Below are positions 1,261 to 60,734 of a stretch of DNA of 64,000 nucleotides, one piece after another. A program made the translations under genes and the position numbers. Origin of the DNA: Macrostomum lignano (taxonomy: Eukaryota); the NCBI GenBank assembly GCA_002269645.1, contig NIVC01000887.1:186001-250000 (forward strand). Reading direction: 5' to 3'. A model generated the notes under the pieces. That model was given only the letters and a program-made list of their open reading frames with translations. It made no database searches and was not told the origin of the DNA. Every line of letters begins with the position of its first letter. The first letter of the stretch is position 1.

Positions 1261-1713
1261 AACTCTGCGCTTGCGCTCGCATTTTGACAGCAGCCAAGCT
1301 GGCCTGTCCAGGGCTGCTGTAGTTTGTTTTTTATGGAACTTGTTAGGTGTTATTTAAATAAAATCTCAATACCCGTTTTTTTATACAAAACTTTTGCGTG
1401 AATATTGAGTGAATGAATATATTTTTAGCTGTTGTATTTTTTTCAAACGTGAATAATTTTAACTTCATTTTTATAAAACTTCGATGATTAATTTTGCGTT
1501 TCATCTGCGCTGTTAAAGCAACGGCATCCAAATAGTGCATCCCAAATAAAAGCAGAATAAATATTTATGAATACATGAAAAATTACAAAAATATCTGGTG
1601 TTAGTTTTTACGACTTCGAGGTTAAAAGTGCCGTTTACTATACAGTACTCTGTCCAGCTGTAATGATGAACACAATATATATGTTGTCATACTGGATATT
1701 CGGTGTTCAGTGT

Positions 1714-4580: not shown

Positions 4581-5629
4581 GTTTGCTTGGCTGGGGTTTT
4601 CGGGCTATTGATTAATTAGTATCTGGTAGAATAAAGCCGAGAGAGCAGAGCAAGCAGACTTGAAGACTACGCCCCTGAGAACTAACAGTTTGCAGTGTGC
4701 AGTGGCAGTCGTTGCATTTATGGATTTTCAGCCTCCCCCTTAAGCTTCCTTCCCTCCTACTCCCTGCCCTGTCGCGTTTCAAACCTGCTCTACCTCACCA
4801 TGCGCGAGGGGGTAAATAGTCTCTGTTACCATGGCAACACTGTACAGTGCCACGCATAGGACAGAGACGGCAAGCAGTACGCGGGACAGAGAGAGAGACT
4901 TGCACTCAGCATGACTCAAAGACAACAATATAAGAGAGTTCTCTCTCTCCCCCTTAGCTTTACAGCCCAGCCCGCATTGTTTATTACATGCGCGAAGCAA
5001 CTTTTGTGTTGCTAAATTTAGCCCGAACGACCTACCTGCGTCACTCACATTTCACATAGCTACTGAGTTACTGACTGCTTCAAGCCCTCCGCTTCTCCAT
5101 AGCTAATTCTCTTTTTCTGCACTGAGACTTTACCTGACTCAGCCAAGCTAAATATGCCGAAGGTTTAGCTGCATTATGAGCAATGCGCCTTTGGTTTAGG
5201 TTTTAGCATTTATCCATTATCAAAGAGATTTTACAGCATCCACAATATACGCTGTTGTGCTTGTTTCTAAAAATTGTCTTCGTGTGTTTTTTTTAATATT
5301 TAGCAGCTTCAGCTATGGCTCATTCAGTATTAACATTTTCACTAATTTTACAATCTTTACCTAATTTCGAACAGCATCTGTGATGCTGTGTCAAACGCAT
5401 TTGCCAAAACATTTTCGTTGTTTAAAAAAAAATGCAGCTTGGGCGTTTACTGACAGAGTCACACAAATTAACAGCTTAATCTTGCAAATTACCGAGTAGT
5501 CTAATTAGCCGATTAATTTGTCTCAGCTGAGGGCAAGCAATTAAACAATTTGCTTTTGCTAGGGTCACCTCTGCACTCGGCTAACCACATGACTCAAATT
5601 GGCATTGCATCGGGGATTCGAATCAAGCT

Positions 5630-8600
5630 CAGTTCCTGACCCATGCAGCTCGCAGCTCCATGTCTCAGCTGAGTCAGTCCCTGACCCATGCAGCTCACCG
5701 CCAAATCTCTCAGCTGAGTCAGTCCCTGACCCATGCAGCTCGCAGCCCCATGTCTCAGCTGAGTCAGTCCCTGACCCATGCAGCTCGCAGCCCAATGTCT
5801 CAGCTGAGTCAGTCCCTGACCCATGCAGCTCGCAGCCCAATGTCTCAGCTGAGTCAGTCCCTGACCCATGCAGCTCGCAGGCCCATGTCTCAGCTGAGTC
5901 AGTCCCTGACCCATGCAGCTCACAGTCCCATGTCTCAGCTGAGTCAGTCCCTGACCCATGCAGCTCACAGGCTCATCTCTCAGCTGAGTCAGTCCCTGAC
6001 CCATGCAGCTCGCAGCTCCATGTCTCAGCTGAGTCAGTCCCTGACCCATGCAGCTCGCAGCCCAATGTCTCAGCTGAGTCAGTCCCTGGCCCATGCAGCT
6101 CGCAGCCCAATGTCTCAGCTGAGTCAGTCCCTGACCCATGCAGCTCACAGTCCCATGTCTCAGCTGAGTCAGTCCCTGACCCATGCAGCTCACAGTCCCA
6201 TGTCTCAGCTGAGTCAGTCCCTGGCCCATGCAGCTCACAGTCCCATGTCTCAGCTGAGTCAGTCCCTGGCCCATGCAGCCCGCAGGCCCATGTCTCAGCT
6301 GAGTCAGTCCCTGACCCATGCAGCTCACAGTCCCATGTCTCAGCTGAGTCAGTCCCTGGCCCATGCAGCCCGCAGGCCCATGTCTCAGCTGAGTCAGTCC
6401 CTGACCCATGCAGCTCACAGTCCCATGTCTCAGCTGAGTCAGTCCCTGACCCATGCAGCTCACAGTCCCATGTCTCAGCTGAGTCAGTCCCTGGCCCATG
6501 CAGCTCACAGTCCCATGTCTCAGCTGAGTCAGTCCCTGGCCCATGCAGCTCACAGTCCCATGTCTCAGCTGAGTCAGTCCCTGACCCATGCAGCTCGCAG
6601 GCCCATGTCTCAGCTGAGTCAGTCCCTGGCCCATGCAGCTCGCAGGCCCATGTCTCAGCTGAGTCAGTCCCTGACCCATGCAGCTCGCAGGCCCATGTCT
6701 CAGCTGAGTCAGTCCCTGACCCATGCAGCTCACAGTCCCATGTCTCAGCTGAGTCAGTCCCTGACCCATGCAGCTCGCAGGCCCATGTCTCAGCTGAGTC
6801 AGTCCCTGGCCCATGCAGCTCACCGCCAAATCTCTCAGCTGAGTCAGTCCCTGACCCATGCAGCTCACAGCCCAATGTCTCAGCTGAGTCAGTCCCTGAC
6901 CCATGCAGCTCGATCACCGCCAAATCTCTCAGCTGAGTCAGTCCCTGACCCATGCAGCTCACCGCCAAATCTCTCAGCTGAGTCAGTCCCTGACCCATGC
7001 AGCTCGATCACCGCCAAATCTCTCAGCTGAGTCAGTCCCTGACCCATGCAGCTCACAGGCCCATGTCTCAGCTGAGTCAGTCCCTGGCCCATGCAGCTCA
7101 CAGTCCCATGTCTCAGCTGAGTCAGTCCCTGGCCCATGCAGCTCGCAGGCCCATGTCTCAGCTGAGTCAGTCCCTGGCCCATGCAGCTCACAGTCCCATG
7201 TCTCAGCTGAGTCAGTCCCTGGCCCATGCAGCTCACAGTCCCATGTCTCAGCTGAGTCAGTCCCTGGCCCATGCAGCTCACAGTCCCATGTCTCAGCTGA
7301 GTCAGTCCCTGACCCATGCAGCTCGCAGGCCCATGTCTCAGCTGAGTCAGTCCCTGGCCCATGCAGCTCGCAGGCCCATGTCTCAGCTGAGTCAGTCCCT
7401 GACCCATGCAGCTCGCAGGCCCATGTCTCAGCTGAGTCAGTCCCTGACCCATGCAGCTCACAGTCCCATGTCTCAGCTGAGTCAGTCCCTGACCCATGCA
7501 GCTCGCAGGCCCATGTCTCAGCTGAGTCAGTCCCTGGCCCATGCAGCTCACCGCCAAATCTCTCAGCTGAGTCAGTCCCTGACCCATGCAGCTCACAGCC
7601 CAATGTCTCAGCTGAGTCAGTCCCTGACCCATGCAGCTCGATCACCGCCAAATCTCTCAGCTGAGTCAGTCCCTGACCCATGCAGCTCACCGCCAAATCT
7701 CTCAGCTGAGTCAGTCCCTGACCCATGCAGCTCGCAGCCCAATGTCTCAGCTGAGTCAGTCCCTGACCCATGCAGCTCACAGGCCCATGTCTCAGCTGAG
7801 TCAGTCCCTGGCCCATGCAGCTCACAGTCCCATGTCTCAGCTGAGTCAGTCCCTGGCCCATGCAGCTCGCAGGCCCATGTCTCAGCTGAGTCAGTCCCTG
7901 GCCCATGCAGCTCACAGTCCCATGTCTCAGCTGAGTCAGTCCCTGGCCCATGCAGCTCACAGTCCCATGTCTCAGCTGAGTCAGTCCCTGGCCCATGCAG
8001 CTCACAGTCCCATGTCTCAGCTGAGTCAGTCCCTGACCCATGCAGCTCGCAGGCCCATGTCTCAGCTGAGTCAGTCCCTGGCCCATGCAGCTCGCAGGCC
8101 CATGTCTCAGCTGAGTCAGTCCCTGACCCATGCAGCTCGCAGGCCCATGTCTCAGCTGAGTCAGTCCCTGACCCATGCAGCTCGCAGGCCCATGTCTCAG
8201 CTGAGTCAGTCCCTGACCCATGCAGCTCGCAGGCCCATGTCTCAGCTGAGTCAGTCCCTGACCCATGCAGCTCGCAGCCCAATGTCTCAGCTGAGTCAGT
8301 CCCTGGCCCATGCAGCTCACAGTCCCATGTCTCAGCTGAGTCAGTCCCTGACCCATGCAGCTCGCAGGCCCATGTCTCAGCTGAGTCAGTCCCTGGCCCA
8401 TGCAGCTCGCAGGCCCATGTCTCAGCTGAGTCAGTCCCTGACCCATGCAGCTCGCAGGCCCATGTCTCAGCTGAGTCAGTCCCTGACCCATGCAGCTCAC
8501 AGTCCCATGTCTCAGCTGAGTCAGTCCCTGACCCATGCAGCTCGCAGGCCCATGTCTCAGCTGAGTCAGTCCCTGGCCCATGCAGCTCGCAGGCCCATGT

Positions 8601-8825
8601 CTCAGCTGAGTCAGTCCCTGACCCATGCAGCTCGCAGGCCCATGTCTCAGCTGAGTCAGTCCCTGACCCATGCAGTTCACCGCCAAATCTCTCAGCTGAG
8701 TCAGTCCCTGACCCATGCAGCTCACAGGCCCATGTCTCAGCTGAGTCAGTCCCTGACCCATGCAACTCACAGCCCCATGTCTCAGCTGAGTCAGTCCCTG
8801 ACCCATGCAACTCACTACCCCATGT
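5630..8825. repeat. 45-bp minisatellite (CCCATGCAGCTCGCAGGCCCATGTCTCAGCTGAGTCAGTCCCTGA), ~70 units, between the two tetraspanins
   Basis: Direct periodicity; variant units (CACCGCCAAATCTC, +GATC) recur as higher-order blocks. Explains all long ORFs at 5.6-8.9 kb. Confidence 0.97.
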
Positions 8826-9322
8826 CTTGAACAGCCAGTACTGTCATTTAAACAAAACAGTTCTCCCCTGAGAAGAAAGCAAAGGAAATGAGCGAACAGT
8901 CAGAAACACTATCCATAGTACTGATTCTAGTAGTGAATAGGCACACATTAATTTCAAATATCCTCATCGTTCAAGGACCGTTTGATCTGATAAAAAAGTT
9001 TTTTGGAGATATGAGTACTGTAAAACATAAATTGTGCTCAGTTTCATTGAGCAGGCAGTGAAGTTATAGCTCGTATTAAAAAGTGAAAAGTTAAAATGTC
9101 GAGAGTAACTACAGTGTACTGGAGTTCAAACAAAACTGATATATTATTGATTTCATATTTAAATCGTTTCGATCTTTTTTGTTTGAGAATTGTAAATAAA
9201 CATTTTCATGTATAAATATTTGCATCCTGATAATGTCTTTAATAAAAATGTTCCGCGTTGTAAAATGTTTAAATGTTTAACTCGCAGTTGTCCATGGCTT
9301 CAAAAGCTTGAGATGCGAAACT

Positions 9323-13605
<4,283 letters not shown>

Positions 13606-23200: not shown

Positions 23201-24290
23201 GGATTGGGGAATTAGGAGAGGGAGGTTGGGAGAGGGAGGTTGGGAGAGGGAGGTTGGGAGAGGGAGGTTGGGAGAGGGAGGTTGGGAGAGGGAGATAGGG
23301 AGAGGGAGATGGGGAGAGGGAGATAGGGAGAGGGAGATTGGGAGTGGGAGTTGGGATTGGGGAATTGGGAGAGGGTGGTTGGGAGAAGGAGGTTGGGAGA
23401 GGGAGGTTAGGAGAGGGAGATTGGGAGAGGGAGATTGGGAGAGGGAGGTTGGGAGAGGGAGGTTGGGAGAGGGAGATTGGGAGAGGGAGGTTGGGAGTGG
23501 GAGTTGGGATTGGGGAATTGGGAGAGGGTGGTTGGGAGGAGGTTGGGAGAGGGAGGTTGGAAGAGGGAGGTTGGGAGAGGGAGGTTGGGAGAGGGAGGTT
23601 GGGAGAGGGAGGTTGGGAGAGGGAGGTTGGAAGAGGGAGGTTGGGAGAGGGAGGTTGGGAGTGGGAGTTGGGAGATGGAGGTTGGGAGTGGGAGTTGGGA
23701 TTGGGGAATTAGGAGAGGGAGGTTGGGAGAGGGAGGTTGGGAGAGGGAGGTTGGAAGAGGGAGGTTGGGAGAGGGAGGTTGGGAGAGGGAGGTTAGGAGA
23801 GGGAGATTGGGAGAGGGAGATTGGGAGAGGGAGGTTGGGAGAGGGAGGTTGGGAGAGGGAGATTGGGAGAGGGAGGTTGGGAGAGGGAGGTTGGGAGAGG
23901 AAGGGATGTCATCAGACCACAACGGACGATCTCGCCCTCCAGCAGGCGCGGAGCAGCCGGGCACCGCAGCTTCAATCGGTTGCTCTCGACCGGCCTCGCC
24001 GATCTTCATTCGACAGCGCAGTGAGCTGCGTCGCTCCGCCAGCCGCCGCCGCCGTCGCCGCCGCCGCCAAGCGCCGGGTGACCTTCCGGACTGACGCGGA
24101 GATCATCGGCACGGCGGACAACATCGACAGACAGCCGGTGTACCAGCAGTTCCAGCCGGCTCCAAACGAATTCCAAAGCGGTCGCAACGCGGCGGAGCAG
24201 CGGCACAGCTATTTTGGCCACCGACAAGGCGACGCGAAGTCCGCGGCAGAGGCAGCGGAAATCGATTGCGTTTACCAGACACTCGTGTGA
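20283..24290 (+). CDS. SH3-domain adaptor-like protein (3 putative coding exons)
   Basis: Exon 20283-20403 (poly-Q, phase 1) joins in frame to exon 22045-22651, which contains an SH3 domain (RARVLFSFEASGPGELSVTAGQPVRALYHVGKRWLFVLTGAGQVGYIPFLYA, ~22227-22385). The terminal exon ends at 24290 (...KRRVTF...VYQTLV*); its acceptor (24017 fits the phase) and the N-terminus are uncertain. Confidence 0.7.
20495..21900. repeat. 23-bp C-rich minisatellite (CCGACTGCAATCTCCCTCTCCCA) in SH3-gene intron 1
   Basis: About 60 units read directly. Confidence 0.96.
22660..23900. repeat. 14-bp G-rich minisatellite (GGGAGAGGGAGGTT / GGGAGAGGGAGATT) downstream of the SH3 exon
   Basis: Direct periodicity; dense GGG runs with G-quadruplex potential. 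Confidence 0.96.
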
Positions 24291-24540
24291 CAGCTGCCCG
24301 GCAACTAGATGGCTGTCTGTACCATACTGTACATACTGCAGAGTATAGGGCGCGCTGACTGCATTTGTTTAACTACTTGCTTAATACTACAGTAACTTTT
24401 TCACTTTTAAAATTAACAAAAAATTAACAAAATTTGGGATGCTTCCGTATTACAAGCGGAGCAACTCAGCAACCAGCAACTCAGTGTTGTGTTTCATGCT
24501 AATATTTAATACCGGTGGCAGAGCGGCTCAGCGGTAAATA

Positions 24541-24941
24541 ACTAGATGGGCCACTCAGCACATTTGCGTGCAAGTTACTTTCAGTTCAGTAGTCAGTTAT
24601 ACAGAACCATTTTATTTAACGACAGGCTTGTTTGGCTCTTACCCCCGCCCCCTAAGCTTAAACCCTCAAACTCCACACGGAACCCCTGCCCCGCCCCAAT
24701 TTTTATTGCCTTTCTCTGAATTCCAGCCTAAAGCTGCCATGTACATTTCAGTGGACTGGCTAATGTACATTATTGCTGAACCAATTAGCAAGCTGTTTAC
24801 GCCTGCAAGCTTGGGCTTCTAAACTTATCAAAGTCGTTTCAGCTGCTTTTATTTTTATAAAATAGCTTATGTATTATTCTTCTTTGCTACTGAACTGAAA
24901 GTGGAAAGCCTAAGTATATATGCCTGAGTGGCCCATCTAGT
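24541..24941. mobile_element. TA-flanked MITE-like element with 18-bp terminal inverted repeats
   Basis: ACTAGATGGGCCACTCAG at 24541-24558 and its exact reverse complement at 24924-24941; TA on both sides; no ORF. Confidence 0.7.
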
Positions 24942-25769
24942 TATTCCTGTGTCTGTGCCCATGGTTCGATCCGTGCAAGGCCAAATTAATTTTGGCTGGG
25001 GGTTGTGGTGCGTCCTTCGACTTTAGCTGTCCATGGATGACTTGCGATCACTACTTCTAGGCTAGAATTATGGCCAAAATATCGCCTATAAAAACTTAAG
25101 CGATTATCTATGATTTGAGCATAAAACACTTATTATACTACTTTAATCAGCCTAGTCAAGTGTGCTGCTCTATCCTCTTAGTGGTCCTCGCAAATAAATA
25201 ATACGCAAAATTTGATTCGTAGGCATTATAACAAGGTGAAGCATTTATTTTTCTGACTCGGTATTCATTTCATTCATTGTCAACTGTTCACACTTTAAAG
25301 AAGCAGCAATGCAAATAAAAACAACATTTTTGCACAGAATAATTTCTGTTTATTAAAAACAAAATATTAATTCAACGCGCATCAAAACTACTGCCCAGTA
25401 GTGCGCGGCATCCGGGAACATCTAGACAGATATAAAAGTGCGTTTCAAACAGGCACTTTTAGGAGGAGAAACGTCTTTTGAAATATTAAGAGGTTTATAA
25501 TATCATAGATAAATAATGGTGAAATTTGAAGGCACAAAATAATTGAATGATTTAGTAAGGGTTAATTGGAGTTAATAAAAAGGGCTTCATGAAACAGCAA
25601 ACAGTGCATAACACAGTTAAAACAGTAACTCTGTTGCCAAAATATTTATCTGATTTTGAGTTTCATTTGTAAGTCAAGAAGCTGAGCAGAGTGACGTCCG
25701 GTGGCTGGAATATTTAAAGACGAATTCAAATGTGTATTATATGCATAGACAACATACATTTATATACTG

Positions 25770-26095
25770 TGTGATAAAGAGAGAGGCTGATAAGAGAGAG
25801 GCTGATAAGAGAGAGGCTGATAAGAGAGAGGCTGATAAGAGAGAGGCTGATAAGAGAGAGGCTGATAAGAGAGAGGCTGATAAGAGAGAGGCTGATAAGA
25901 GAGAGGCTGATAAGAGAGAGGCTGATAAGAGAGAGGCTGATAAGAGAGAGGCTGATAAGAGAGAGGCTGATAAGAGAGAGGCTGATAAGAGAGAGGCTGA
26001 TAAGAGAGAGGCTGATAAGAGAGAGGCTGATAAGAGAGCTGATAATAGAGCCGATAAGAGAGGATGATAAGAGAGCTGATAAGAGAGGCTGATAA
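25770..26095. repeat. 15-bp tandem repeat (AGAGAGAGGCTGATA)
   Basis: About 18 perfect units plus a degenerate tail; source of the READK / LSLIS pseudo-ORFs. Confidence 0.96.
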
Positions 26096-26218
26096 GCTTG
26101 ATGGACTGAGGCAGACATCATAAAGTCACAGAGAGTAAAGCCACGAGACAAAGTCAGAAACCTTGGTTGAGCAATAGTGACTCACCTGAGCCTACTATCC
26201 AGTCTCGCGCAAGTGACG

Positions 26219-26461
26219 TCACTTTTTGGACCCCGGGCGGGCGGGGTTCGCCGGGAAGGGCTTCTTAGCTGAGGCCGGCTTCTTGCCATCCGAGCTGGCG
26301 CTGCTATTGGCGCCGCCCTGTGGCTGTTTGGCGCTGGCTAGACGGCTCTTCAGCGCGGCTTTCCGCTTCTCGAGGGCGTCAGCCTGGCGCTCTTTGGCCG
26401 CCGACACCTGCTGATCATTCTCCTGGGCCTGGGCCAGTAGCTGCCGGCTGCGCTCCTCGTG
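26219..26461 (-). CDS. Probable distal terminal exon of the Kv3 gene (coiled-coil then low-complexity tail)
   Basis: GC-rich island with acceptor ccgcag|CAC (phase 0) reading HEERSRQLLAQAQENDQQVSAAKERQADALEKRKAALKSRL...PGSKK*; matches the phase-0 GTGAGT donor at 32072 after ...EARVNEE. Confidence 0.55.
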   Translation of the reverse strand, partial: HEERSRQLLAQAQENDQQVSAAKERQADALEKRKAALKSRLASAKQPQGGANSSASSDGKKPASAKKPFPANPARPGSKK

Positions 26462-26574
26462 CTGCGGTGCAACGCGAGGATGTGAGATGTCGGAGGTTGA
26501 GTCGGGGTCTAGTTAGAGAGGCCAGTCAACATGCAACTTGCAGTAGGTGCTTTGGGTCTCTGTAGCAAATTACA

Positions 26575-29500
26575 TCACTCCTGCACCCACCTCAATCCTG
26601 CACCCACCTCACTCCTGAAACCACCTCACTCCCGCACCCACCTCACTCCCGCACCCACATCACTCCTGCACCCACATCACTCCTGCACCCACATCACTCC
26701 TGCACCCACCTCACTCCTGCACCCACCTCACTCCTGCACCCACCTCACTACTGCACCCACCTCACTACTGCACCCACCTCACTCCGACGCCCACCTCACT
26801 CCTGCACACACCTCACTCCTGCACCCATTTCACTACTGCACCCACCTCAATCCTGCACCCACCTCACTCATCCACCCACCTCACTCCTGCACCCACCTCA
26901 CTCCTGCACCTACCTCACTCCTACACCCACCTCACTACTGCACCCACCTCACTCCGACGCCCACCATCACTCCTGCACCCACCTCAATAAAGCACCCACC
27001 TCAATAAAGCACCCACCTCAATAAAGCACCCACCTCAATAAAGCACCCACCTCAATAAAGCACCCACCTCAATAAAGCACCCACCTCAATAAAGCACCCA
27101 CCTCAATAAAGCACCCACCTCACTCCTGCACCCAACTCAATAAAGCACCCACCTCAATAAAGCACCCACCTCAATAAAGCACCCACCTCAATAAAGCACC
27201 CACCTCAATAAAGCACCCACCTCAATAAAGCACCCACCTCAATAAAGCACCCACCTCAATAAAGCACCCACCTCAATAAAGCACCCACCTCAATAAAGCA
27301 CCCACTTCAATAAAGCACCCACCTCACTACTGCACCCACCTCACTACTGCACCCACCTCACTCCGACGCCCACCTCACTCCTGCACACACCTCACTCCTG
27401 CACCCATTTCACTACTGCACCCACCTCAATCCTGCACCCACCTCACTCATCCACCCACCTCACTCCTGCACCCACCTCACTCCTGCACCTACCTCACTCC
27501 TACACCCACCTCACTACTGCACCCACCTCACTCCGACGCCCACCATCACTCCTGCACCCACCTCAATAAAGCACCCACCTCAATAAAGCACCCACCTCAA
27601 TAAAGCACCCACCTCAATAAAGCACCCACCTCAATAAAGCACCCACCTCAATAAAGCACCCACCTCAATAAAGCACCCACCTCAATAAAGCACCCACCTC
27701 AATAAAGCACCCACCTCAATAAAGCACCCACCTCACTCCTGCACCCAACTCAATAAAGCACCCACCTCAATAAAGCACCCACTTCAATAAAGCACCCACC
27801 TCAATAAAGCACCCACCTCAATAAAGCACCCACTTCAATAAAGCACCCACCTCAATAAAGCACCCACCTCAATAAAGCACCCACCTCAATAAAGCACCCA
27901 CCTCAATAAAGCACCCACCTCAATAAAGCACCCACCTCAATAAAGCACCCACCTCACTCCTGCACCCAACTCAATAAAGCACCCACCTCAATAAAGCACC
28001 CACCTCAATAAAGCACCCACCTCAATAAAGCACCCACCTCAATAAAGCACCCACCTCAATAAAGCACCCACCTCAATAAAGCACCCACCTCAATAAAGCA
28101 CCCACCTCAATAAAGCACCCACCTCAATAAAGCACCCACCTCAATAAAGCACCCACTTCAATAAAGCACCCACTTCAATAAAGCACCCACCTCACTACTG
28201 CACCCACCTCACTACTGCACCCACCTCACTCCGACGCCCACCTCACTCCTGCACACACCTCACTCCTGCACCCATTTCACTACTGCACCCACCTCAATCC
28301 TGCACCCACCTCACTCATCCACCCACCTCACTCCTGCACCCACCTCACTCCTGCACCTACCTCACTCCTACACCCACCTCACTACTGCACCCACCTCACT
28401 CCGACGCCCACCATCACTCCTGCACCCACCTCAATAAAGCACCCACCTCAATAAAGCACCCACCTCAATAAAGCACCCACCTCAATAAAGCACCCACCTC
28501 AATAAAGCACCCACCTCAATAAAGCACCCACCTCAATAAAGCACCCACCTCAATAAAGCACCCACCTCAATAAAGCACCCACCTCAATAAAGCACCCACC
28601 TCACTCCTGCACCCAACTCAATAAAGCACCCACCTCACTCCTGCACCCAACTCAATAAAGCACCCACCTCAATAAAGCACCCACTTCAATAAAGCACCCA
28701 CCTCAATAAAGCACCCACCTCAATAAAGCACCCACCTCAATAAAGCACCCACCTCAATAAAGCACCCACTTCAATAAAGCACCCACCTCACTACTGCACC
28801 CACCTCACTACTGCACCCACCTCACTCCGACGCCCACCTCACTCCTGCACACACCTCACTCCTGCACCCATTTCACTACTGCACCCACCTCAATCCTGCA
28901 CCCACCTCACTCATCCACCCACCTCACTCCTGCACCCACCTCACTCCTGCACCTACCTCACTCCTACACCCACCTCACTACTGCACCCACCTCACTCCGA
29001 CGCCCACCATCACTCCTGCACCCACCTCAATAAAGCACCCACCTCAATAAAGCACCCACCTCAATAAAGCACCCACCTCAAAAAAAAGCACCCACCTCAA
29101 TAAAGCACCCACCTCAATAAAGCACCCACCTCAATAAAGCACCCACCTCAATAAAGCACCCACCTCAATAAAGCACCCACCTCAATAAAGCACCCACCTC
29201 AATAAAGCACCCACTTCAATAAAGCACCCACCTCAATAAAGCACCCACCTCAATAAAGCACCCACTTCAATAAAGCACCCACCTCAATAAAGCACCCACC
29301 TCAATAAAGCACCCACCTCACTCCTGCACCCAACTCAATAAAGCACCCACCTCAATAAAGCACCCACCTCAATAAAGCACCCACCTCAATAAAGCACCCA
29401 CCTCAATAAAGCACCCACCTCAATAAAGCACCCACCTCAATAAAGCACCCACCTCAATAAAGCACCCACCTCAATAAAGCACCCACCTCAATAAAGCACC

Positions 29501-30280
29501 CACCTCAATAAAGCACCCACTTCAATAAAGCACCCACCTCACTACTGCACCCACCTCACTACTGCACCCACCTCACTCCGACGCCCACCTCACTCCTGCA
29601 CACACCTCACTCCTGCACCCATTTCACTACTGCACCCACCTCAATCCTGCACCCACCTCACTCATCCACCCACCTCACTCCTGCACCCACCTCACTCCTG
29701 CACCTACCTCACTCCTACACCCACCTCACTACTGCACCCACCTCACTCCGACGCCCACCATCACTCCTGCACCCACCTCAATAAAGCACCCACCTCAATA
29801 AAGCACCCACCTCAATAAAGCACCCACCTCAATAAAGCACCCACCTCAATAAAGCACCCACCTCAATAAAGCACCCACCTCAATAAAGCACCCACCTCAA
29901 TAAAGCACCCACCTCAATAAAGCACCCACCTCAATAAAGCACCCACCTCAATAAAGCACCCACCTCAATAAAGCACCCACCTCACTCCTGCACCCAACTC
30001 AATAAAGCACCCACCTCAATAAAGCACCCACTTCAATAAAGCACCCACCTCAATAAAGCACCCACCTCAATAAAGCACCCACCTCAATAAAGCACCCACC
30101 TCAATAAAGCACCCACCTCAATAAAGCACCCACCTCAATAAAGCACCCACCTCAATAAAGCACCCACCTCAATAAAGCACCCACCTCAATAAAGCACCCA
30201 CCTCAATAAAGCACCCACCTCAATAAAGCACCCACTTCAATAAAGCACCCACCTCACTCCTGCACCCAACTCACTCCTGC
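26575..30280. repeat. 17-bp composite satellite (CACCCACCTCAATAAAG / CACCCACCTCACTCCTG) with higher-order structure
   Basis: About 215 units; a cassette of variant units (marked by CTCCGACGCCCACCTCACTCCTGCACACAC) recurs at ~26781, 27360, 28229, 28823 and 29575. Confidence 0.97.
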
Positions 30281-31107
30281 AAGTTCACAGGACTCGAGGA
30301 AAGATCTGAATTTTCACCCATGAATAGACTTGATAAAAAAACTTCAACAAAAAGATGGCCATCACAAGTGGGAATGATGGGGGCGTAGCGGCGCGGGGTT
30401 GAAAGCTTTTGAGAGCTTCAAACAGAGCGGGAAGCGCAAAGCAGCCACACGCGGGAGCCTAGTTACTTCTGTATCCCAAACCCCACTATGAATTGAATTG
30501 ACTGCTGAGCAGTCTGCCACAGCTGGCTTCCCAGCTACCTGTCAGACAGTTCCTCAGTGAGGTATCCCGCTGGGCACTTGAATAATTTAGAGCATTTTGC
30601 AGAATTCCCGCACAGATCCACCCCCCCCCCCACAGCAGCTACGCTGACTCACTGTGACATCCAACTCAAGCTGCAGGAGGACCACCGCCGAGCCCCTCCA
30701 GTCTCACCCTGCTGCCTTCATTTGAGCATGTTGCCATGCGGGTAGAACAGATGCCCAACCCTGATATGAGGCACAAGCCCGCAGCGGCAACAGGCAGCTG
30801 ACAGAAGCCAGTTTATCCCGCACCCTAGCTCCTAGCAGAAATAACTCAACAGAATGGCCACTCAACTGCCTCATCTTTACACTTGAGTCGACCAGCAGCC
30901 CTATGGTCTCGCTGAAAAAATTCATTAGCATATTTACAGGTATTTTCAGAACTAAATTCTGGATTATGCAATATGCTTCAATATACTTGAATGTCAATAA
31001 AGTTATATGCTGTGCTTGTACCATAGACTACGTGACTGAGAAATGCCAGCTCTCAGTCTCAGCGACTGCCAGTTCAACTATAGCTTTTTGTGTTCTAGTT
31101 TGGACCG

Positions 31108-32018: not shown

Positions 32019-47931
<15,913 letters not shown>

Positions 47932-50592: not shown

Positions 50593-53500
50593 TTAAGACT
50601 GCCTGCAGAGGGGATCGTTGCGGGCAGACTCGGGGATCTGGTACTTGCCTGACGGGTCAGCCGCTAGTGCGCCTTCATCTTCTGCTGCTGCGGCTGATGA
50701 CGCCCTCCCTGATAGCTCTGCGGTTGCCTTGGCTACGCCACCGGCCTCCCTGGACACTGGCGGACTGGCTGAATCTTTGTTCTCTATCGATACTGAACCG
50801 GTTAAATCAACCTTCGCTTTGGATACGGTGCTGGCCGAGTCTTTGTTCTGTTTACTTAAATAGCTAGTAGGCTCTTTGTTTTCTTTGCACATAGAACTGA
50901 AGGAGTCCGTGTGCGCCTTGAGCATCGAGCTAGTGGAGTCTTTGTTCTCCTTGAGCATCGAGCTGGTAGAGTCTTTGTTCTCCTTGAGCATCGAGCTAGT
51001 GGAGTCTTTGTTCTCCTTGAGCATCGAGCTGGTAGAGTCTTTGTTCTCCTTGAGCATCGAGCTAGTGGAGTCTTTGTTCTCCTTGAGCATCGAGCTGGTA
51101 GAGTCTTTGTTCTCCTTGAGCCTCGAGTCGGTGAAGTCTTTGTATTCCCTGGCCGCAGGCGGGGGAGGCGGGGGAAAAGACTTGACCGAGGCAGTCCCAG
51201 GAAGTCTAGCAGTGACCGCTGCGGCAGAAGCTACCGGCTGTGCTGCCGAGTTCGGCACGGGCAGTCGAGCAACCGGCGGCCCCCCGGAGCGTCGCTGCTT
51301 GCCGCCGGCGGCGGCCGACGCCTCCTCGCCGGAGTTGCGTCCGGTGGCGCGCGACGGCACAACGTGGCGACGAACAACGGCGGCGCAATGCTGGCAGGCC
51401 TGGGCGCGCTCCACTATGGCCGAGAAGGCCAAACCCATCCGGCCGCTCTTCTCATCGAGAGTCGCCAGTTCCTCAGTCAGCCGCTGGCAGCGAGACCGAA
51501 GCTCGTCCGATTCCGCTGTCGCGCGCTCCGCCGCCGTCTCGGATGCCGCCGCTCGCTCGGCAACAATCGCCAGCTGCTTGTTGAGCTCCGAACAGCGGCA
51601 TTCGGCAGCGTCAGCTCGAGTCTTAGCCGACTCAAGCTTAGCCTCAACAGTTGCCACCTGCTCAGCAGTCGCTTGCAGCCGATTTTCCAGCTCAGAACAG
51701 CGAACCTCGGCAGCTGCGGCTCGCTCCGCGGCGTCAGCCAGCTCGGCCTGCAGCTTTGAAGCCGCTGAGCTGTCAATCTCGTCCGGCATAGCGGCCACTT
51801 GGTTGAGCTCGGATTTCAACGATTCAATTTTATCGTTGAGCCGCCTGAGCTCGTACTCGGCGCCGGAGACAGCTTCGACGGCGTCGTAGAATGCCCGACG
51901 CAGATCGGCCTGCCGTTCGTCCGATTTGACAGCCGAGTCCAGGCTGAGGAAGAGGTCCACGCGGACGCCCTGGTCGCGGCAGCTGATGGCCTGCAGTACA
52001 GTCATGAGCAGAGCTCGATAGTCTGTGTCGCCGGCCTCGTCAGAATAATCTCGCTTGTCCAGCGCACGCCGCAGGTCGGCCAAAGCGTCGGTAGCGTCGG
52101 CCAGCTCGCGGTGCAGCTCGGCATTGTCGCCGCCGCAATCGTCGGCCTTGACAAGCTGATGGTAGTCGGCTAGGGACATTGTTCGGCCTTCGGCTAACTG
52201 AACCTGCAGCTTGGCCTTCAAATTTGAGGCCTTGGCGATTGCGCGGCGGCACAGACGATGCGCCCGGCTGTAGTTGGCAGCCATGCGGTCCCGCTCCCGC
52301 TTCCTGGCGTCGGACAGCTCGTACAGGGCGGCGATGTCGTTGAAGGCGGCGGCGACCCGACGCCGCTCGGCCAGGAGCTGTTCGCTGGCTTCGGCCAGGC
52401 GCGACTCCAGCCCGGCCGCCGCAGCCTCCGAGTCCGTCAGGCGAGCCGCCAGGCCTTCCAGACGGTGCAGCTCGACGCTGTCAATGGCAGTCTGGCATTC
52501 GACATCGGCCGGGGCATCGAGCGAGGTGGCCGCCACTCGCTCAGTCTGTACAGCCGAGTGCAGGCAGGTTTCGTCAAGCTGCAGCCGCCTGAGCTCCGGG
52601 CAAGTCATGGTGGACGAGCTGACCTTCACAATCCATTCGGAGCCGGCGAACGTCTGCGTGCAGGCCGTCCGGACCGACGGCTTCGACGGCTGCGGTTGCG
52701 GCGGCGGCGGAGGCGGCGGAGTTGGCGCTGGCGGAGGCGCGGCAGCGGCCGAGCGGGCGGATTCGAGCTGCTCCAGCTGGGCGAGCAGTCTGGCGTTCTC
52801 CTCCTCGGCCAGCGACATCAGCTGGGCTCGGTCGGCCCGCTCTCTGGACAGCTGGCCGAGAGCTTCGTCCAGTTCGGATTGCAGGCGGAGCACCTCGGAG
52901 TTGATCACGCCGCGCCTGCCCTCCGACCAGTACTTGCTGGTGCGCTCCCTGTTGTTTGTCGGGTGGGGAGTGCACGATGTACTTTTATTTCGAAAATAAG
53001 CTAGACAGCTGGCTTTTAGGGCTGATGCTTTGTAACGATTTGAAAAATATTTTTCTTTAGAAAACTAACAATGTACAAGGCTGTCTACACGTATAGCTTA
53101 TTAAACTTTTTATGACCTATGATAACCTAAATTAACCAACATTTATTACCCCTGAGGACCTAAATTAACCAATATTATGACCCCTGAGGACCTAAATTAA
53201 CCAACATTTATTACCCCTGAGGACCTAAATTAACCAACATTTATGACCCCTGAAGACCTAAATTAACCAACATTTATGACCCCTGAGGACCTAAATTAAC
53301 CAACATTTATTACCCCTAAGGACCTAAATTAACCAACATTTATTACCCCTGAGGACCTAAATTAACCAACATTTATGACCCCTGAGGACCTAAATTAACC
53401 AACATTTATGACCCCTGAGGACCTAAATTAACCAACATTTATGACCCCTGAGGACCTAAATTAACCAACATTTATTACCCCTAAGGACCTAAATTAACCA

Positions 53501-56500
53501 ACATTTATTACCCCTGAGGACCTAAATTAACCAACATTTATGACCCCTGAGGACCTAAATTAACCAACATTTATGACCCCTGAGGACCTAAATTAACCAA
53601 CATTTATGACCCCTGAGGACCTAAATTAACCAACATTTATTACCCCTGAGGACCTAAATTAACCAACATTTATTACCCCTGAGGACCTAAATTAACCAAC
53701 ATTTATGACCACTGATGACCTAAATTAGCCAATATTTATGATCTCTGAGGACCTAAAATAACCAATATTTACGACCCTCGATGACCTAAATTAATTAATA
53801 TTTATGACCCTGGATGACCTAAGTTAGTAAATATTTATGAACCTGGATGACCCAAGTTAATAAATATTTATGAACCTGGATGACACAAGTTAATGAATAA
53901 TTGAGCCCTGATGATCTACATGTAAGTACGCATGACCCTGGCGACCCTACACCCTAAAAACCCAAAGCGCCCAACCTGAACTCTTCCAGCTCCGCAATCA
54001 GCTTGGCATTTTCCTCCTGCAGTCTGATGGCCTCCAAACCGCTGGCCTCCAGCAGCGGCCTCAGATTGGCCAGCTCATTGCGCAGCTCGGCCTCGGCTGC
54101 GGCCAGCTCGGTGAAGCGGGCGTGCATCGAGTCAGACTCCTCAGCTGCTGCCGCGGCTCGAGCCTCGGCGTCCAAAAGCCGGGCCTCGGTCCAGGCCAGG
54201 CGGCGCTGCTGCTCCTCCGTGGCCGGTATCAGCGTGGCGTCGGATTTGTTCGGACTGCCGGACGCGTCGGAGCCGGCGTCTGTGGCGCGCTGTTCCGCTT
54301 CGGCAAGTCGCTTTTCCGCTTCCGTGGCTCGATTATCCGCCTCTGTGGCGCGCTGTTCCGCTTCCGTAGCGCGCTGCTCCGCTTCCGTAGCGCGCTGCTC
54401 CGCTTCCGACGTGCGAGCTTCTATTTCTTTGGCGCGAGTTTCCGATTCCGTTAAGCGAGCTTCTGCTTCCGTGGCGCGCGTCTCTGCTTTCATGACGTCA
54501 GTTTGTAACTCGGTTAAGCGAGATTCTGCTTCCGAAGCACGAGTTTCCGATTCCAATAAGCGGTTTTCCACTTCTTTGGCGCGATTTCGTTCTTCAATGA
54601 CGAGCGCTTCTGCTTCTTCAGCGCGCGTTTCTGCTTCTACAGCGCGTTTTTCCGCTTCTTCAGCGCGTGATTCTGCTACTGTGACACGCGTTTCCACTTC
54701 CGCGGCGCGCGTTTCTGCTTCCGTAGCGCGCTTCTGCTCTTCGATGATGAGCGCTTCCGCTTCTGTAACGCGTGTTTCAGCTTTCGTAGCACGCGTTTCT
54801 GCTTCCGTGGCGCGCGTCTCGGCTTCCGCAGCGCGCTTCCGCTCTTCGATGACAAGCTCTTCCGCTTCCGAGGCGCTTGTCTCTAAGCTGGTTAAGCGAG
54901 CTTCCGCTTCCAAAGCGCGAGTCTCCGATTCCAATAAGCGATTCGTGGCTTCAGTGGCGCGCTCCTCTGCTTCCGAGGTGCGGCTCCGCTCTTCCAAAAT
55001 GAGCGCTTCCGCTTCTTTAGCGCGCGTTTCCGCCTCCGCGTTGCGCGCCTCTGCTTCCTTGGCGCGCTTCCGCTCTTCAATGACCAGTGCTTCCGCTTCC
55101 TTGGCGCGCAATTCAGCTTGCTCGATACGCGATTCCGCGTTGCCAACCGACTGCTCCGTATCTCCAGCGCCTGATTCATCAGCTTCGATACCGAATACCT
55201 GCATGTCCAGTGCCTCGCCGCCAGCAGCAGCTGGCTTTGCCCCCTGAGCAGCTTCCGCCGCAACCAGTTCCGCTTCTACGGCTCGAGCCTCAGCCGCGAT
55301 TAACCGCTGCTCCAATTCCGAAGCGTATTGCGCCGCTTCGTTAGCGCGCGACTCCGCTTTCTCTAAACTGGCTTCCCACGGGCTGTCTCTGGGTATCTCG
55401 GTTTGAACCTGCGCATCGGCGAGGACCAGCGGCGCTTCAGCCAGGTCTGCGGCAGCCTCCGTCTGAGTGCTGGCCACCAGCTGACGCTCCAGATCGACGA
55501 CACGGCGAGCCAGCTGCCGCGCCTCATCGGCAGCTGAATCAGAGACTGCATCAGCTTGGACTGCAACTACTGGCGTTGCCAGCGACTCCGCATCGGCTCT
55601 CGGCGATAGAACAGTTGGCCGGCCAAAGATGTCGCTGCCGCCGATGTCCTCGCGCTGGCTGCTCTCCAGAGCCGCCGCTGCAGCTTCGGCGGCCTGCAGC
55701 TCCAGGCCGATGAACTCCTCCTCCTCCATGCGGGATATCCGACCGCACAGGGAGGCATTCTCATGCTCCAGCTTGGCCACCTGGACAATGGGCAGAACCA
55801 TCACTGTGCGTGATTATGCTGACACTTAGCAATTATAGCTGCCTGAACCTCTGCACACACCTATCTGAGCTGCCTGAACCTCTGCACACCTATCTGAGCT
55901 GCCTGAACCTCTGCACACACCTATCTGAGCTGCCTGAACCTCTGCACACCTATCTGAGCTGCCTGAACCTCTGCACACACCTATCTGAGCTGCCTGAACC
56001 TCTGCACACACCTATCTGAGCTGCCTGAACCTCTGCACACACCTATCTGAGCTGCCTGAACCTCTGCACACCTATCTGAGCTGCCTGAACCTCTGCACAC
56101 ACCTATCTGAGCTGCCTGAACCACTGCACACACCTATCTGAGCTGCCTGAACCTCTGCACACACACCTCAGCCACCCGAACCTCCGCCCACAGACCTCAG
56201 CCACCCGAACCTCAGCCCACACACCTCAGCCACCCAAACCTCAGCCCACACACCTCAGCCACCCGAACCTCCGCCCACAGACCTCAGCCACCCGAACCTC
56301 AGCCCACACACCTCAGCCACCCAAACCTCAGCCTACACACCTCAGCCACCCGAACCTCTGCCCACAGACATCAGCCACCCGAACCTCAGCTAACACACCT
56401 CAGCCACCCAAACCTCAGCCCACACACCTCAGCCACCCGAACCTCCGCCCACAGACCTCAGCCACCCGAACCTCAGTCCACACACCTCAGCCACCCGAAC

Positions 56501-59500
56501 CTCAGCCCACACACCTCAGCCACCCAAACCTCAGCCCACACACCTCAGCCACCCGAACCTCCGCCCACAGACCTCAGCCACCCGAACCTCAGCCCACACA
56601 CCTCAGCCACCCAAACCTCAGCCCACACACCTCAGCCACCCAAACCTCAGCCCACACACCTCAGCCACCCGAACCTCCGCCCACAGACCTCAGCCACCCG
56701 AACCTCAGCCCACACACCTCAGCCACCCGAACCTCAATCCACACACCTCAGCCACACGAACCCCCACCCCTCACCTGCTCAGCCAGCCGGCTGCTATTCC
56801 GTTGCTCCAGTTCGAGTTGAGCAGCTAAGCGCTGCGATTCACCGCAAGCGGCCTGCAACTGCTGCTCCAGCTCGGCAACGCGGGACAGAAGCAGAACCTG
56901 CTGTTCCTGTTGTTGTTGCTGCTGCTGCGGCTGCTGCCAGGACTCAGACTCAGTCTGGCTGTCCCTGTTCACAGTGGCCGTCACGCCGTCAATGCTAAAC
57001 GAAGACGCCTCCATTTGGCTGCATTCTAGACGCCGAAAAAATGATTCGGTCAGCTTTTGGCTAACAAAATTATCGTCAAAGCTGTCGGCTCCGACTGGGG
57101 GGAAAATCTGCTGCTGCTGCTGCGACGAGGCTGTTGGCAGCGAGGGTAACGAAGGCGCCGGGGGCGGTGGTGGAGGCGGCGGCGGTGGCTCTTCGCCGAT
57201 GGCGCCTAGCAGGCAGCGTCGCAGAGCGCCGCTATCTGGCAATTGTCGGCGACTGTTTGGCGCCCAGGTGCGTCGGCGCAGCAGCATGGCGGGGACGTCG
57301 CCAGTGGAACTGTCGTCATCGTCTATACCTGAGGCGCCGCAGTACCTGCGTGGGGACAAAAATTTATGAGAATTTTTATTTCTGTATGAACGGTGATTTC
57401 TAACTACTCCATTTGTACTACCTGCAATAGTCTATTGAGCAGTGGCTAAACTACAGGATCAGATGCGCAATTACAAACGAGAGAACACTGACCTGGACAA
57501 AGTCTCCATCTGGTGCAGGACTCGCTGCCGTTCGGACAGCTGCTCCTCGGCCAGCTGACCAAACCGCGGATTCTCGTCCGCTACTCTGGACGTCTCCATC
57601 TGACGAACGAGTCGCTCGTTTTCAGCCTCGACCCGATCCTTCTGACACGTCATCTTGAGCAGCTGCTCTTTTAGGCTCTCCATCTGTTTTTCTAAACGCT
57701 TTCTGTAGGCCTCGTCGGAAACCGACTCGTTCACTACTGGCTTGTTTTTCACAGTCTTGGCGATTGACGCGAACTGCAGGATATTGGGTTGAAGTTCAGT
57801 GAAACTGGGTTTGGATTTCTGTGGAACTGGGTTTGGATTTCTGTGGAACTGGGTTTGGATTTCTGTGGAACTGGGTTTGGATTTCTGTGGAACTGGGTTT
57901 GGATTTCTGTGGAACTGGGATTGGATTTCTGTGGAACTGGGTTTGGATTTCTGTGGAATCGGTTCGGTTTTCTGTGGAATCAGTTTGGATTTCTGTGGAA
58001 CTGGTTTCGAATTTGTGTGGAATCAGTTCGGGTTTCTGTGGAATCAGTTTGGATTTCTGTGGAATCAGTTCGGGTTTCTGTGGAATCAGTTTGGATTTCT
58101 GTGGAATCAGTTCGGGTTTCTGTGGAATCAGTTTGGATTTCTGTGGAATCAGTTTGGATTTGTGTGGAATCAGTTCGGGTTTCTGTGGAATCAGTTTGGA
58201 TTTCTGCGGAACTGGATTGAGATTTAACAGAGCATCTATGAATCCAGCAGAGGCAAAACTTACATTCAGAGTCCGCTGAGATTGGTCGTACACGGCAGGC
58301 GTGATGTTGCAAACAATTAATGTTCTCGAATTGCCGCCCAGACTCGACATCAGGATGCTGGTCAGTTTGCTATCGCGAAATGATATATAGCTAGAAAAAG
58401 AAGCGAGTTTGAACATGACTTAAAAAACTGGCAAGTGTAATAAGTTATGAATCATGCGCTGAGCATTCAATCCAGAAAGCAGCATCTAGCCTACTCACGA
58501 AGAGTTCTCAGATAGCTGCCTGATGACAAGGCACAGGCTGGACAGGCTGGAGTTGATGTTGCACGCCTCTTTCAGCGTAGTGCCGGATGCGCCGGATTCC
58601 GATACGCGTTCCGATCCGGCTAAGTCGACAAGATTCTGAGCAAAAATTAGGGAAATTTGCAGGCGTTATCTACTTCAAGTAGTTTTGTTGCATTTGAAAG
58701 GCTGAGCTAAATTATAGTCTAAAATATTTGCGGAATTATTGTGAAATCTGATAGATCTGTTGTGGACTCTGATAGATCTGTTGTGGACTCTGATAGATCT
58801 GTCGTGGAATCTGATCGATCTGCTGTGGAATCTGATCGATCTGCTGTGGAATCTGATCGATCTGCTCTGGAATCTGATTGATCTGCTGTGGAATCTGATC
58901 GATCTGCTGTGGAATCTGATCGATCTGCTGTGGAATCTGATAGATATGCTGTGGAATCTGATAGATCTGCTATGGACTCTGCTAGATCTGTTGTGAAATT
59001 TAATAGATCTGCCGTGGAATCTGGTCATCTGATCATCTGATCATTCGTAACTGTCAGCAATATCGTCAAGACAAACCAGCACGGAGTTCCAGATGACACC
59101 GTCCTCCTCGCGACAGCGGGACTCGATGGCCAGCCGCAAGATGGTGTGGGATCGGCTTGAACGCTCGTTCATGTTTGTCTCGCCGATGTGTCTCTGGGCT
59201 GTAGGGGGCCGGGGTCATTAATGGCTAAGCATTCATTACATTTACATGTAAACGTAATAAAGGATCTGAGAGGCTGGTCCAGCAACTGAGAATCTGAGAG
59301 GCTGGCGGCCCAGCAACTGAGGATCTGGAAATCTGGCCCAGCAACTGAGGATCTGGGAGGCTGACCCAGCAACTGAGGATCTGGAAATCTGGCCCAGCAA
59401 CTGAGGATCTGGAAATCTGGCCCAGAAACTGAGGATCTGAGAGGCTGGCCCAGCCACTGAGGATCTGGAAATCTGGCCCAGAAACTGAGGATCTGAGAGG

Positions 59501-60734
59501 CTGGCCCAGCCACTGAGGATCTGGAAATCTGGCCCAGCAACTGAGGATCTGGGAGGCTGGTCCAGCAACTGAGGATCCGGGAGGCTGGCCCAGCAACTGA
59601 GGATCCGGGAGGTTGGCCCAGCAATTGAGGATCCGGGAGGCTGGCCCAGCAACTGAGGATCTGAGAGGCTGGCCCAGCAACTGAGGATCTGGAAATCTGG
59701 CCCAGCAACTGAGGATCTGGAAATCTGGCCCAGAAACTGAGGATCTGAGAGGCTGGCCCAGCCACTGAGGATCTGGAAATCTGGCCCAGCAACTGAGGAT
59801 CTGGAAATCTGGCCGAGCAACTCAGGATCTGGAAATCTGGCCCAGCAACTCAGGATCTGGGAGGCTGGCCCAGCAATTGAGGATCTGGGAGGGTAAAATG
59901 TTTCATAACTTGGCGAACAATCAACACTAATCACAAAAGTCTAACCTTCGCCCTTGCTAAGCAGGTTAAGCACTTCATCAACGCTAGTCACAATCTCCTC
60001 TTTGACGTTGCGCAGCGTTGACTTGGTGCGTTCGATGATAACGGAGACCTTCTTGTCCGGATCGTTTGAGAGCAGATCGATCACTCTCTCGTTGTAAATC
60101 TCTAAGAAGGAAATGCTGACAAGAAATTCACGCTCCGTAGCCATTTCCTGGCGTAGTGGAAGACAGTATCAATTTGTTAGTGACAACAGGTTACAGATGG
60201 CAAAATTGATAAAAATGGCTCTTGTACAAGCGTACCAGAAACACAATACGACATTAAAAAAGCAAATAACAAGCTTAACTATTTAATGATCAGTGATGAA
60301 TCCTAGTTACCTGCAGTGCAAATATATCTCTCAAGGCTAGCACAATGACGCCAGGATCTTGCACGCTGCCATACATTGTGTGCGTCTTGCCGCTGGAGGT
60401 CTGGCCGTAGGCAAACACTGTACCGCTGACGCCCTCCATGCAGGATGTTACTATAGGCTTGACAGCTTGCGTGTACAAGGCTTGGGTCTGGTGAGATTTG
60501 CCATAGACACCATCTGCGGGAGACCACCACATGTGATTATAAATAAGTGAAACAGGTATTAACTAAACATCACGGATACTAAAGCTTACCAAAGCAGAAC
60601 CTCTTGGTGCCATCGGCAGTTCTCACTGTAGAGTCTTCAGCTAGCCACTCCTCCTTGCAGCAGCTGTTCAGCTCCCGCTCTATTAGGGGTCTTAAACGAA
60701 CCACTACGGATATTGTTTCTTGTTTTGCATCCAT
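50593..60734 (-). CDS. CENPE: Kinesin-7 / CENP-E-like motor protein, 10 exons, ~1,982 aa
   Basis: Exons 60734-60590, 60513-60311, 60147-59946, 59198-59077, 58635-58499, 58390-58264, 57773-57493, 57345-56775, 55780-53976, 52948-50593; phases 1,0,1,0,2,0,2,0,2 all compatible (5,949 nt). N-terminal motor with [69 protein letters not shown]; post-motor RRRTW; long coiled coil; C-terminal CRQS. Subfamily call is by motif, not phylogeny. Confidence 0.88.
53150..53900. repeat. 33-bp minisatellite (GAGGACCTAAATTAACCAACATTTATGACCCCT) in kinesin intron 9
   Basis: About 18 clean units decaying toward 53900. Confidence 0.95.
55835..56755. repeat. Composite 29-31-bp minisatellite (CTGCCTGAACCTCTGCACACACCTATCTGAG, then CTCAGCCACCCGAACCTCAGCCCACACAC) in kinesin intron 8
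   Basis: Two related unit types with a switch at ~56160. Confidence 0.94.
57800..58215. repeat. 21-23-bp minisatellite (TTGGATTTCTGTGGAATCAGT) in kinesin intron 6
   Basis: Direct periodicity. Confidence 0.93.
58740..59030. repeat. 21-bp minisatellite (ATCTGATCGATCTGCTGTGGA) in kinesin intron 4
   Basis: Direct periodicity. Confidence 0.92.
59262..59890. repeat. 28-bp minisatellite (GGCCCAGCAACTGAGGATCTGGAAATCT) in kinesin intron 3
   Basis: About 22 units read directly. Confidence 0.94.

Follow-up and report, generated by a model that had tools for sequence, protein, structure and literature searches.

An in-frame 11-residue tandem repeat carrying KEN tripeptides in the tail of a CENP-E-type kinesin of Macrostomum lignano

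The KEN box, reportedly described by Pfleger and Kirschner in 2000 and said to be catalogued as ELM DEG_APCC_KENBOX, is a degron read by Cdh1 and Cdc20, which activate the APC/C (anaphase-promoting complex, or cyclosome). In its extended consensus an acidic residue or Asn (D/N/E) precedes the KEN and a Pro stands at +3. The tripeptide itself is common, occurring in ~10% of human proteins, and 33 substrates have been validated. [quoted passage not shown] Here we analyse a 64,000-nt stretch of the genome of the flatworm Macrostomum lignano (assembly GCA_002269645.1, contig NIVC01000887.1, positions 186,001 to 250,000; hereafter the window, whose own coordinates are used below), in which the minus strand encodes a CENP-E-type (kinesin-7) mitotic kinesin whose C-terminal tail is built from 11-residue tandem repeats bearing KEN. 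The likeness to a KEN box lies in an exact K-E-N within a mitotic protein, in a stretch that is polar and of low complexity. Unlike the conventional motif, the array units lack the preferred flanks and a companion D-box, and their tandem reiteration has no described counterpart: our literature search returned work on multivalent D-box plus KEN degrons and nothing on KEN arrays, in agreement with the initial annotation of the window, which knew of no equivalent.

The closest described relative is human CENP-E, with which the flatworm protein shares a CENP-E-type motor, a long discontinuous coiled coil, a basic-x-T-W sequence ~430 residues in and a Cys at -4 (CKTQ in human, CRQS here). At mitotic exit the human protein undergoes degradation, as the initial annotation had stated, and vanishes with APC/C-Cdh1-type timing alongside the Cdh1 substrate Aurora A; its level falls from mitosis to G1. 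It differs in length (2701 aa versus 1982 aa here) and in its tail, since the flatworm tail has no detectable similarity outside M. lignano. Human CENPE has five KENs by count, none of them a validated degron, and the cited CENP-E literature describes no 11-aa tandem array. A curated compilation of APC/C substrates with validated KEN dependence includes CENPF but omits CENPE. CENP-F (mitosin), a large, farnesylated coiled-coil protein of the kinetochore, comes closest to a precedent for a KEN degron located in the tail of such a CaaX protein; in contrast to our protein it is no kinesin, is not homologous and has a single mapped KEN with no tandem array. The pseudosubstrates BubR1/Mad3 (KEN1 and KEN2) and Acm1 offer a parallel in that more than one KEN or degron per chain engages the activator(s), but they hold KEN, D-box and ABBA motifs at defined spacings for distinct sites or two Cdc20 molecules, whereas here identical KENs recur every 11 residues. 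From coding minisatellites (variable number tandem repeats, VNTRs) in low-complexity protein regions we find no substantive difference, and the sequence bears this likeness out directly: the units run head to tail in multiples of three nucleotides with a 66-bp higher order, have been homogenised independently in two gene copies that differ in copy number, and have older, degenerate units at one flank.

The repeat was detected with Tandem Repeats Finder (TRF) as a 33-bp period at 50873-51143 (8.2 copies, score 388), and is read from the minus strand. At its core lies a young array of six perfect 11-aa units (50920..51117), which the initial annotation had recognised at 50918-51115, a few bases and one register away. 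Two 33-bp unit types alternate in it and differ by TCT ACC versus TCC ACT alone, both changes being synonymous; the 66-bp higher-order unit is thus present three times, and perfect 66-bp periodicity extends over 206 bp (50916-51121). Six degenerate units flank the array, some of them seen initially as decayed copies: unit 0 (51118..51150), which has a different 11-aa reading in a second gene copy, and five old units amounting to 55 aa (50755..50919), one of which reads CKENKEP (KENKEP at 50869..50886). All seven KENs of the 1982-aa protein fall within this region, at aa 1809-1886, against an expectation of 0.29 KEN in the whole protein from its composition. All seven go back to the copying of a single unit and so represent a single event, not seven independent ones. 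With a unit length of 33 bp, divisible by 3, and six perfect head-to-tail copies inside an open reading frame (ORF) of 771 codons, the array has the makeup of a coding minisatellite.

A second locus, NIVC01000142.1:491171-521710 (L001), is colinear with the window (40000-61300) for >20 kb at 88-96% DNA identity, downstream minisatellites included. Most likely the locus stems, as a homeologue, from the known duplication of the genome, the alternative being a divergent allele. The protein of this copy, PAA89684.1 (BOX15_Mlig004592g1, 1987 aa), has the same architecture as the window kinesin, includes the repeat tail and ends ...DPLCRQS. The coding sequences (CDS) of the two copies diverge with a dS of 0.037 and a dN/dS of 0.22, which indicates that both are under purifying selection. 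In the second copy the young array comprises seven KEN units in the order C, Ax4, D, E (one KENKDSTTSML, four of type A and two with ACG, the last unit ending in V), as compared with the six units, (A,B)x3, of the window, and the paralogue has eight KENs in all. The unit that was amplified also differs, being the 66-bp double unit in the window copy and the 33-bp unit in L001. By contrast, the two copies agree throughout the five old units (165 of 165 nt). Since the young arrays differ in number and order while the old units are identical, the former must have been homogenised independently after the duplication. These comparisons uphold the repeat expansion, which is recent, and the length variability, both suggested by the initial annotation, the latter for these two copies. 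Recent gene conversion was considered for the identity of the old units and discarded, as the 1 synonymous difference found versus ~2.8 expected is not significant.

The same comparison bears on whether the repeat is expressed as protein. The GenBank annotation of the assembly was derived from an RNA-seq transcriptome and TransDecoder ORFs (PMC5730564), and because PAA89684.1 contains the tail, the tail of the paralogue belongs to a transcript-derived model; with its seven units this model further shows that the array is coding and length-variable. Variants among the young units comprise four synonymous and two non-synonymous changes where ~18-25% synonymous would be expected (P = 0.012-0.038), and the old units, when compared with the unit consensus, have a pN of ~0.25-0.39 and a pS of 0.5-1.1. 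The synonymous bias in the young units together with pN below pS in the old ones argues that the peptide is translated and not free to vary. We conclude from these sequence comparisons that the repeat array is translated.

The surroundings of the gene are exceptionally repetitive. Tandem arrays, 35 after merging, cover 49% of the window and 72% of the intron bases of the kinesin gene. Between the two gene copies, the minisatellite-bearing introns differ in length by 165-904 bp through array turnover, while the exons differ by in-frame indels alone, mostly of repeat units, namely EAEQRAT, a unit of 14 aa and the KEN unit of 11 aa. In-frame minisatellites, KEN-containing ones too, are the expected product of such repeat-rich sequence. 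The M. lignano genome as a whole consists of >50% repeats, with 15% simple and tandem repeats and 180 Mb of duplicated blocks (PMC5730564), and the tandem fraction of the window far exceeds this genome average of 15%. Among the window arrays are a 17-bp unit x216, (ATAG) x546 and a 45-bp unit x71; arrays lie, for example, at 26583-30256, 43032-45212, 5629-8827 and 10209-11863. Tandem 11-aa arrays also occur in other proteins: an eIF4E-like M. lignano protein, P0124 (PAA59770.1), has ~20 units of DNKELTGSAIV, and an ENA protein, P0122, has dozens of units of RIKENEEHCVD, another tandem KEN array.

Searches for relatives of the tail were confined to M. lignano in their yield. A word-indexed search of a clustered protein database with the tail ORF returned no homologue, because PAA89684.1 sits in a 90% cluster that is represented by a 500-aa fragment. 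An exhaustive HMMER search with the tail gave 41 matches, one of which is a 214-aa M. lignano fragment. The other 40, among them a fish amine oxidase, a sea-cucumber TCF25, a hagfish RIF1 and an ENA protein, all fall on the array and were rejected as homologues: they are unrelated proteins with 11-aa tandem repeats that share the periodicity only.

The explanation that we favour, with moderate confidence, is that the array is a young in-frame coding minisatellite that forms a tolerated or mildly constrained polar spacer and in which KEN is a passenger. An older 11-residue repeat region, now degenerate, would have pre-existed in the CENP-E tail, and we infer that replication slippage or unequal exchange has recently amplified one unit type anew: in the window copy a 66-bp double unit (x3), in the paralogue a 33-bp unit (x4) together with variants. 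The translated array places 66-77 residues, polar, net-neutral and rich in Ser/Thr, after a basic Pro/Ala-rich linker and ahead of the CaaX-type C-terminus. This peptide most likely serves as a spacer or a phosphorylatable segment, and KEN, being part of the unit, would have been multiplied with it as a passenger, without selection for a multivalent degron. Several observations weigh against this explanation. KEN is present in each of the 13 young units of the two copies, including one whose Glu codon has changed synonymously from GAG to GAA; the synonymous bias means that the peptide matters to some degree; and CKENKEP, with its Pro at +3, is identical in both copies. As human CENP-E is degraded at mitotic exit through a degron that the cited papers leave unmapped, a degron in the tail is biologically reasonable. 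Finally, the exhaustive HMMER search found no orthologous tail outside M. lignano.

A quite different function had been proposed in the initial annotation, namely that the tandem KENs constitute a multivalent degron for APC/C-Cdh1/Cdc20, tunable by copy number or phosphorylation, or else a pseudosubstrate decoy, and thereby control destruction at mitotic exit. We consider this unlikely, even though the seven to eight exact KENs are all in the C-terminal tail, are present in every young unit of both copies and are each adjoined by Ser/Thr residues, and even though the human protein disappears together with a Cdh1 substrate and the binding of a single KEN to Cdh1 is weak enough that extra copies could boost the effective local concentration. 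Uniformity among the young units is no sign of selection, given how recently they arose. In the degenerate units KEN is intact in 1 of 6 versus 0.82 expected from an overall residue identity of 0.515, while the tripeptides ENK, NKD and KDS are each intact in 2 of 6. Conservation per position among the units peaks at D5, K4 and K1 and not over K-E-N, nor is the identity of the old units between copies specific to KEN. Preferential conservation of KEN among the decayed copies, on which the initial annotation had made its proposal depend, is therefore not what we find. Moreover, the array units read LKENKDS, with neither D/N/E before KEN nor Pro at +3; CKENKEP is the only unit with Pro at this position, and D/N/E precedes KEN in no unit. 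No RxxL that could act as a D-box partner was found in the last 280 residues of the kinesin. Given that there is one KEN pocket per activator, tandem KENs could raise rebinding but would not confer true avidity, and AlphaFold2 (AF2) models the array as a helix. The frequency of the tripeptide among human proteins, and the absence of CENPE with its five KENs from the 33 validated substrates, also speak against it. None of the sequence tests applied here supports a degron or decoy function of the KEN array. We likewise give little credence to an extended form in which the array would be a copy-number-tunable Cdh1/Cdc20 docking platform, gated by Ser/Thr phosphorylation and placed by the farnesylated end, that sets the rate of destruction at mitotic exit or locally buffers APC/C at the kinetochore corona, and whose length would already differ between the gene copies. 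Activity might alternatively reside in CKENKEP as the sole functional KEN box, with the six-unit array a neutral neighbour that copies the tripeptide. That CKENKEP could be a single conventional KEN box is plausible from its sequence: it is the only KEN followed by xxP, its K and E persist although their codons differ synonymously from the consensus (AAA GAA versus AAG GAG), it is the same in both gene copies, and it is located on the margin of the predicted helix, where the predicted local distance difference test (pLDDT) score drops below 50. As an account of the whole region this is nonetheless quite improbable, for it concerns one motif retained at the chance rate and preceded by Cys instead of D/N/E, the paralogue identity extends over all the old units and not CKENKEP alone, and no orthologue was found to support it.

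The period itself might be what matters, if the 11-residue repeat built a long helix of the 11/3 type, as in LEA group 3 proteins, synucleins or apolipoproteins, and acted as a structural or surface-binding element by the farnesylated end. AF2, run on the last 423 aa as a single sequence, indeed predicts one long helix over the array (aa 1797-1886, pLDDT 72-88), with pLDDT <50 in the flanks of the array, and gives the old units and the C-terminus low confidence, but the helix is weak evidence because a perfect repeat was folded without an alignment. The tail had initially been described as Ser/Thr-rich and disordered: the composition is borne out for the array, at 34% Ser plus Thr, whereas disorder is not confirmed by the single-sequence model. 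Like the LEA_4 and the synuclein or apolipoprotein repeats, the array has a period of 11 and a predicted continuous helix, and it yields a match to Pfam LEA_4 that is faint for the paralogue too; at 31 bits against a gathering score of 51.1 we rejected membership in this family, and nothing indicates homology. The hydrophobic moment of the array peaks at 98 degrees, which would suit a helix but follows automatically from a period of 11, and as only 2 of 11 residues are hydrophobic, with Ser, Thr, Asn and Asp making up 6 of 11, the hydrophobic stripe would be very narrow. We therefore regard a functional helix as very doubtful. Finally, in a genome so extremely rich in repeats the array might be an assembly artefact or be absent from the mature mRNA. 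This is hardly credible in view of its presence at two independent loci with the frame preserved, its inclusion in a transcript-derived protein model, the synonymous bias of its variation and the conserved CaaX-type motif in which the ORF ends.

If the minisatellite explanation is right, the locus is a worked example of a minisatellite-rich genome writing in-frame, motif-bearing sequence into an essential mitotic gene, with two gene copies caught at different repeat states, and it cautions that a linear motif reiterated within a repeat represents a single event. Should the KENs turn out to be used, the tail would be the first tandem-array KEN degron, and copies with 6, 7 or more units would offer a natural allelic series relating degron number to the timing of APC/C destruction. 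In either case, a full-length CENP-E model with a CaaX end is now available for a flatworm capable of transgenesis.

The kinesin gene that carries the repeat was modelled at 50593..60734 on the minus strand with 10 exons (60734-60590, 60513-60311, 60147-59946, 59198-59077, 58635-58499, 58390-58264, 57773-57493, 57345-56775, 55780-53976 and 52948-50593), using a 99%-identical M. lignano protein as guide and inferring the last two junctions from sequence. Its CDS of 5949 nt encodes 1982 aa, every intron has GT-AG boundaries, and the reading frame stays open up to a single terminal stop. Exons 1-8 are matched by P0001 (UniRef A0A1I8H7S5), the exon 9/10 junction (...AELEEF/R/ERTSKYW) is confirmed by the database fragments P0121, P0162 and P0171, and the whole exon architecture agrees with PAA89684.1. 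P0121 (A0A1I8ITB0), a fragment of the coiled coil, bears the UniRef name 'ATG16 domain-containing protein', probably a naming artefact caused by the coiled coil.

Motor motifs were found in upstream stop-to-stop segments on the same strand as the repeat, and the motor domain and neck, encoded by exons 1-7 (57493..60734, minus), match the Pfam Kinesin family. Their best match among solved structures is the CENP-E motor 1t5c (2.4e-86, 293 bits), as compared with 243 bits for kinesin-1. When the motor was used to query a large protein database, the top match was an M. lignano protein at 99% identity, and the next were named CENP-E or KIN-7 proteins at 43-51% identity. By these matches the gene is the M. 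lignano orthologue of CENP-E (kinesin-7), a mitotic kinesin, in line with the first reading of the window. Beyond the motor, RRRTW (aa 429-433; 57264..57278, minus) resembles, in sequence only, the human CENP-E site T422/W423, which is Aurora-phosphorylated and docks PP1 within an RVxF motif (PMC7475649, PMC10474297); it has the basic residues and T-W, with Arg in place of the RVxF Val. The protein has the long coiled-coil stalk expected of CENP-E: within its 1982 aa, exons 9 and 10 give sub-threshold matches to tropomyosin-type Pfam families, and the coiled-coil helices in the last 423 aa reach a pLDDT of 85-96 in the single-sequence AF2 run.

The terminal exon 10 (50593..52948, minus) contains coiled coil, a basic P/A/G-rich linker, the 11-aa repeat region, the C-terminus and the stop; its ORF (50593-52908) runs for the 771 codons without a stop and joins the nine upstream exons in frame. 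The linker lies upstream of the array (aa 1701-1797; 51151..51441, minus), has a net charge of +9, is 44% P+G+A and has an AF2 pLDDT <50, with low confidence at aa 1723-1790. By analogy with human CENP-E it may provide a second microtubule-binding site. The protein ends in CRQS (50596..50607, minus; stop codon at 50593-50595), which is identical in both gene copies and, with its Cys at -4, constitutes a CaaX-type putative farnesylation signal. Human CENP-E ends in Cys-Lys-Thr-Gln, and a Cys at -4 is common to opisthokont CENP-E orthologues and defines their CaaX box (PMC10630089).

Repeats mark the remainder of the stalk as well. Exon 8 (56775-57345, minus) contains homopolymer tracts of Pro x11 and Gln x5 to x8, and in the Gln tract a 2-aa indel separates it from the paralogue. 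The part of the stalk encoded by exon 9 (54279-54932, minus) is built from in-frame 21-bp and 105-bp repeats (ETRATEAE...) and shows unit indels of 7, 14 and 4 aa relative to the paralogue. Also in exon 9, at ~16177 of the second locus, the database models P0171 and P0162 disagree over the 14-aa segment EAEARLTYFQTRAT, which P0162 and the genomic ORF include and PAA89684.1 lacks; the discrepancy could reflect alternative splicing or a difference in modelling. At the second locus the paralogous kinesin has as its upstream neighbour a 555-aa gene without Pfam matches (291-7084 of that locus), and as its downstream neighbour a potassium-channel-like gene with BTB_2 and Ion_trans domains (23782-30540).

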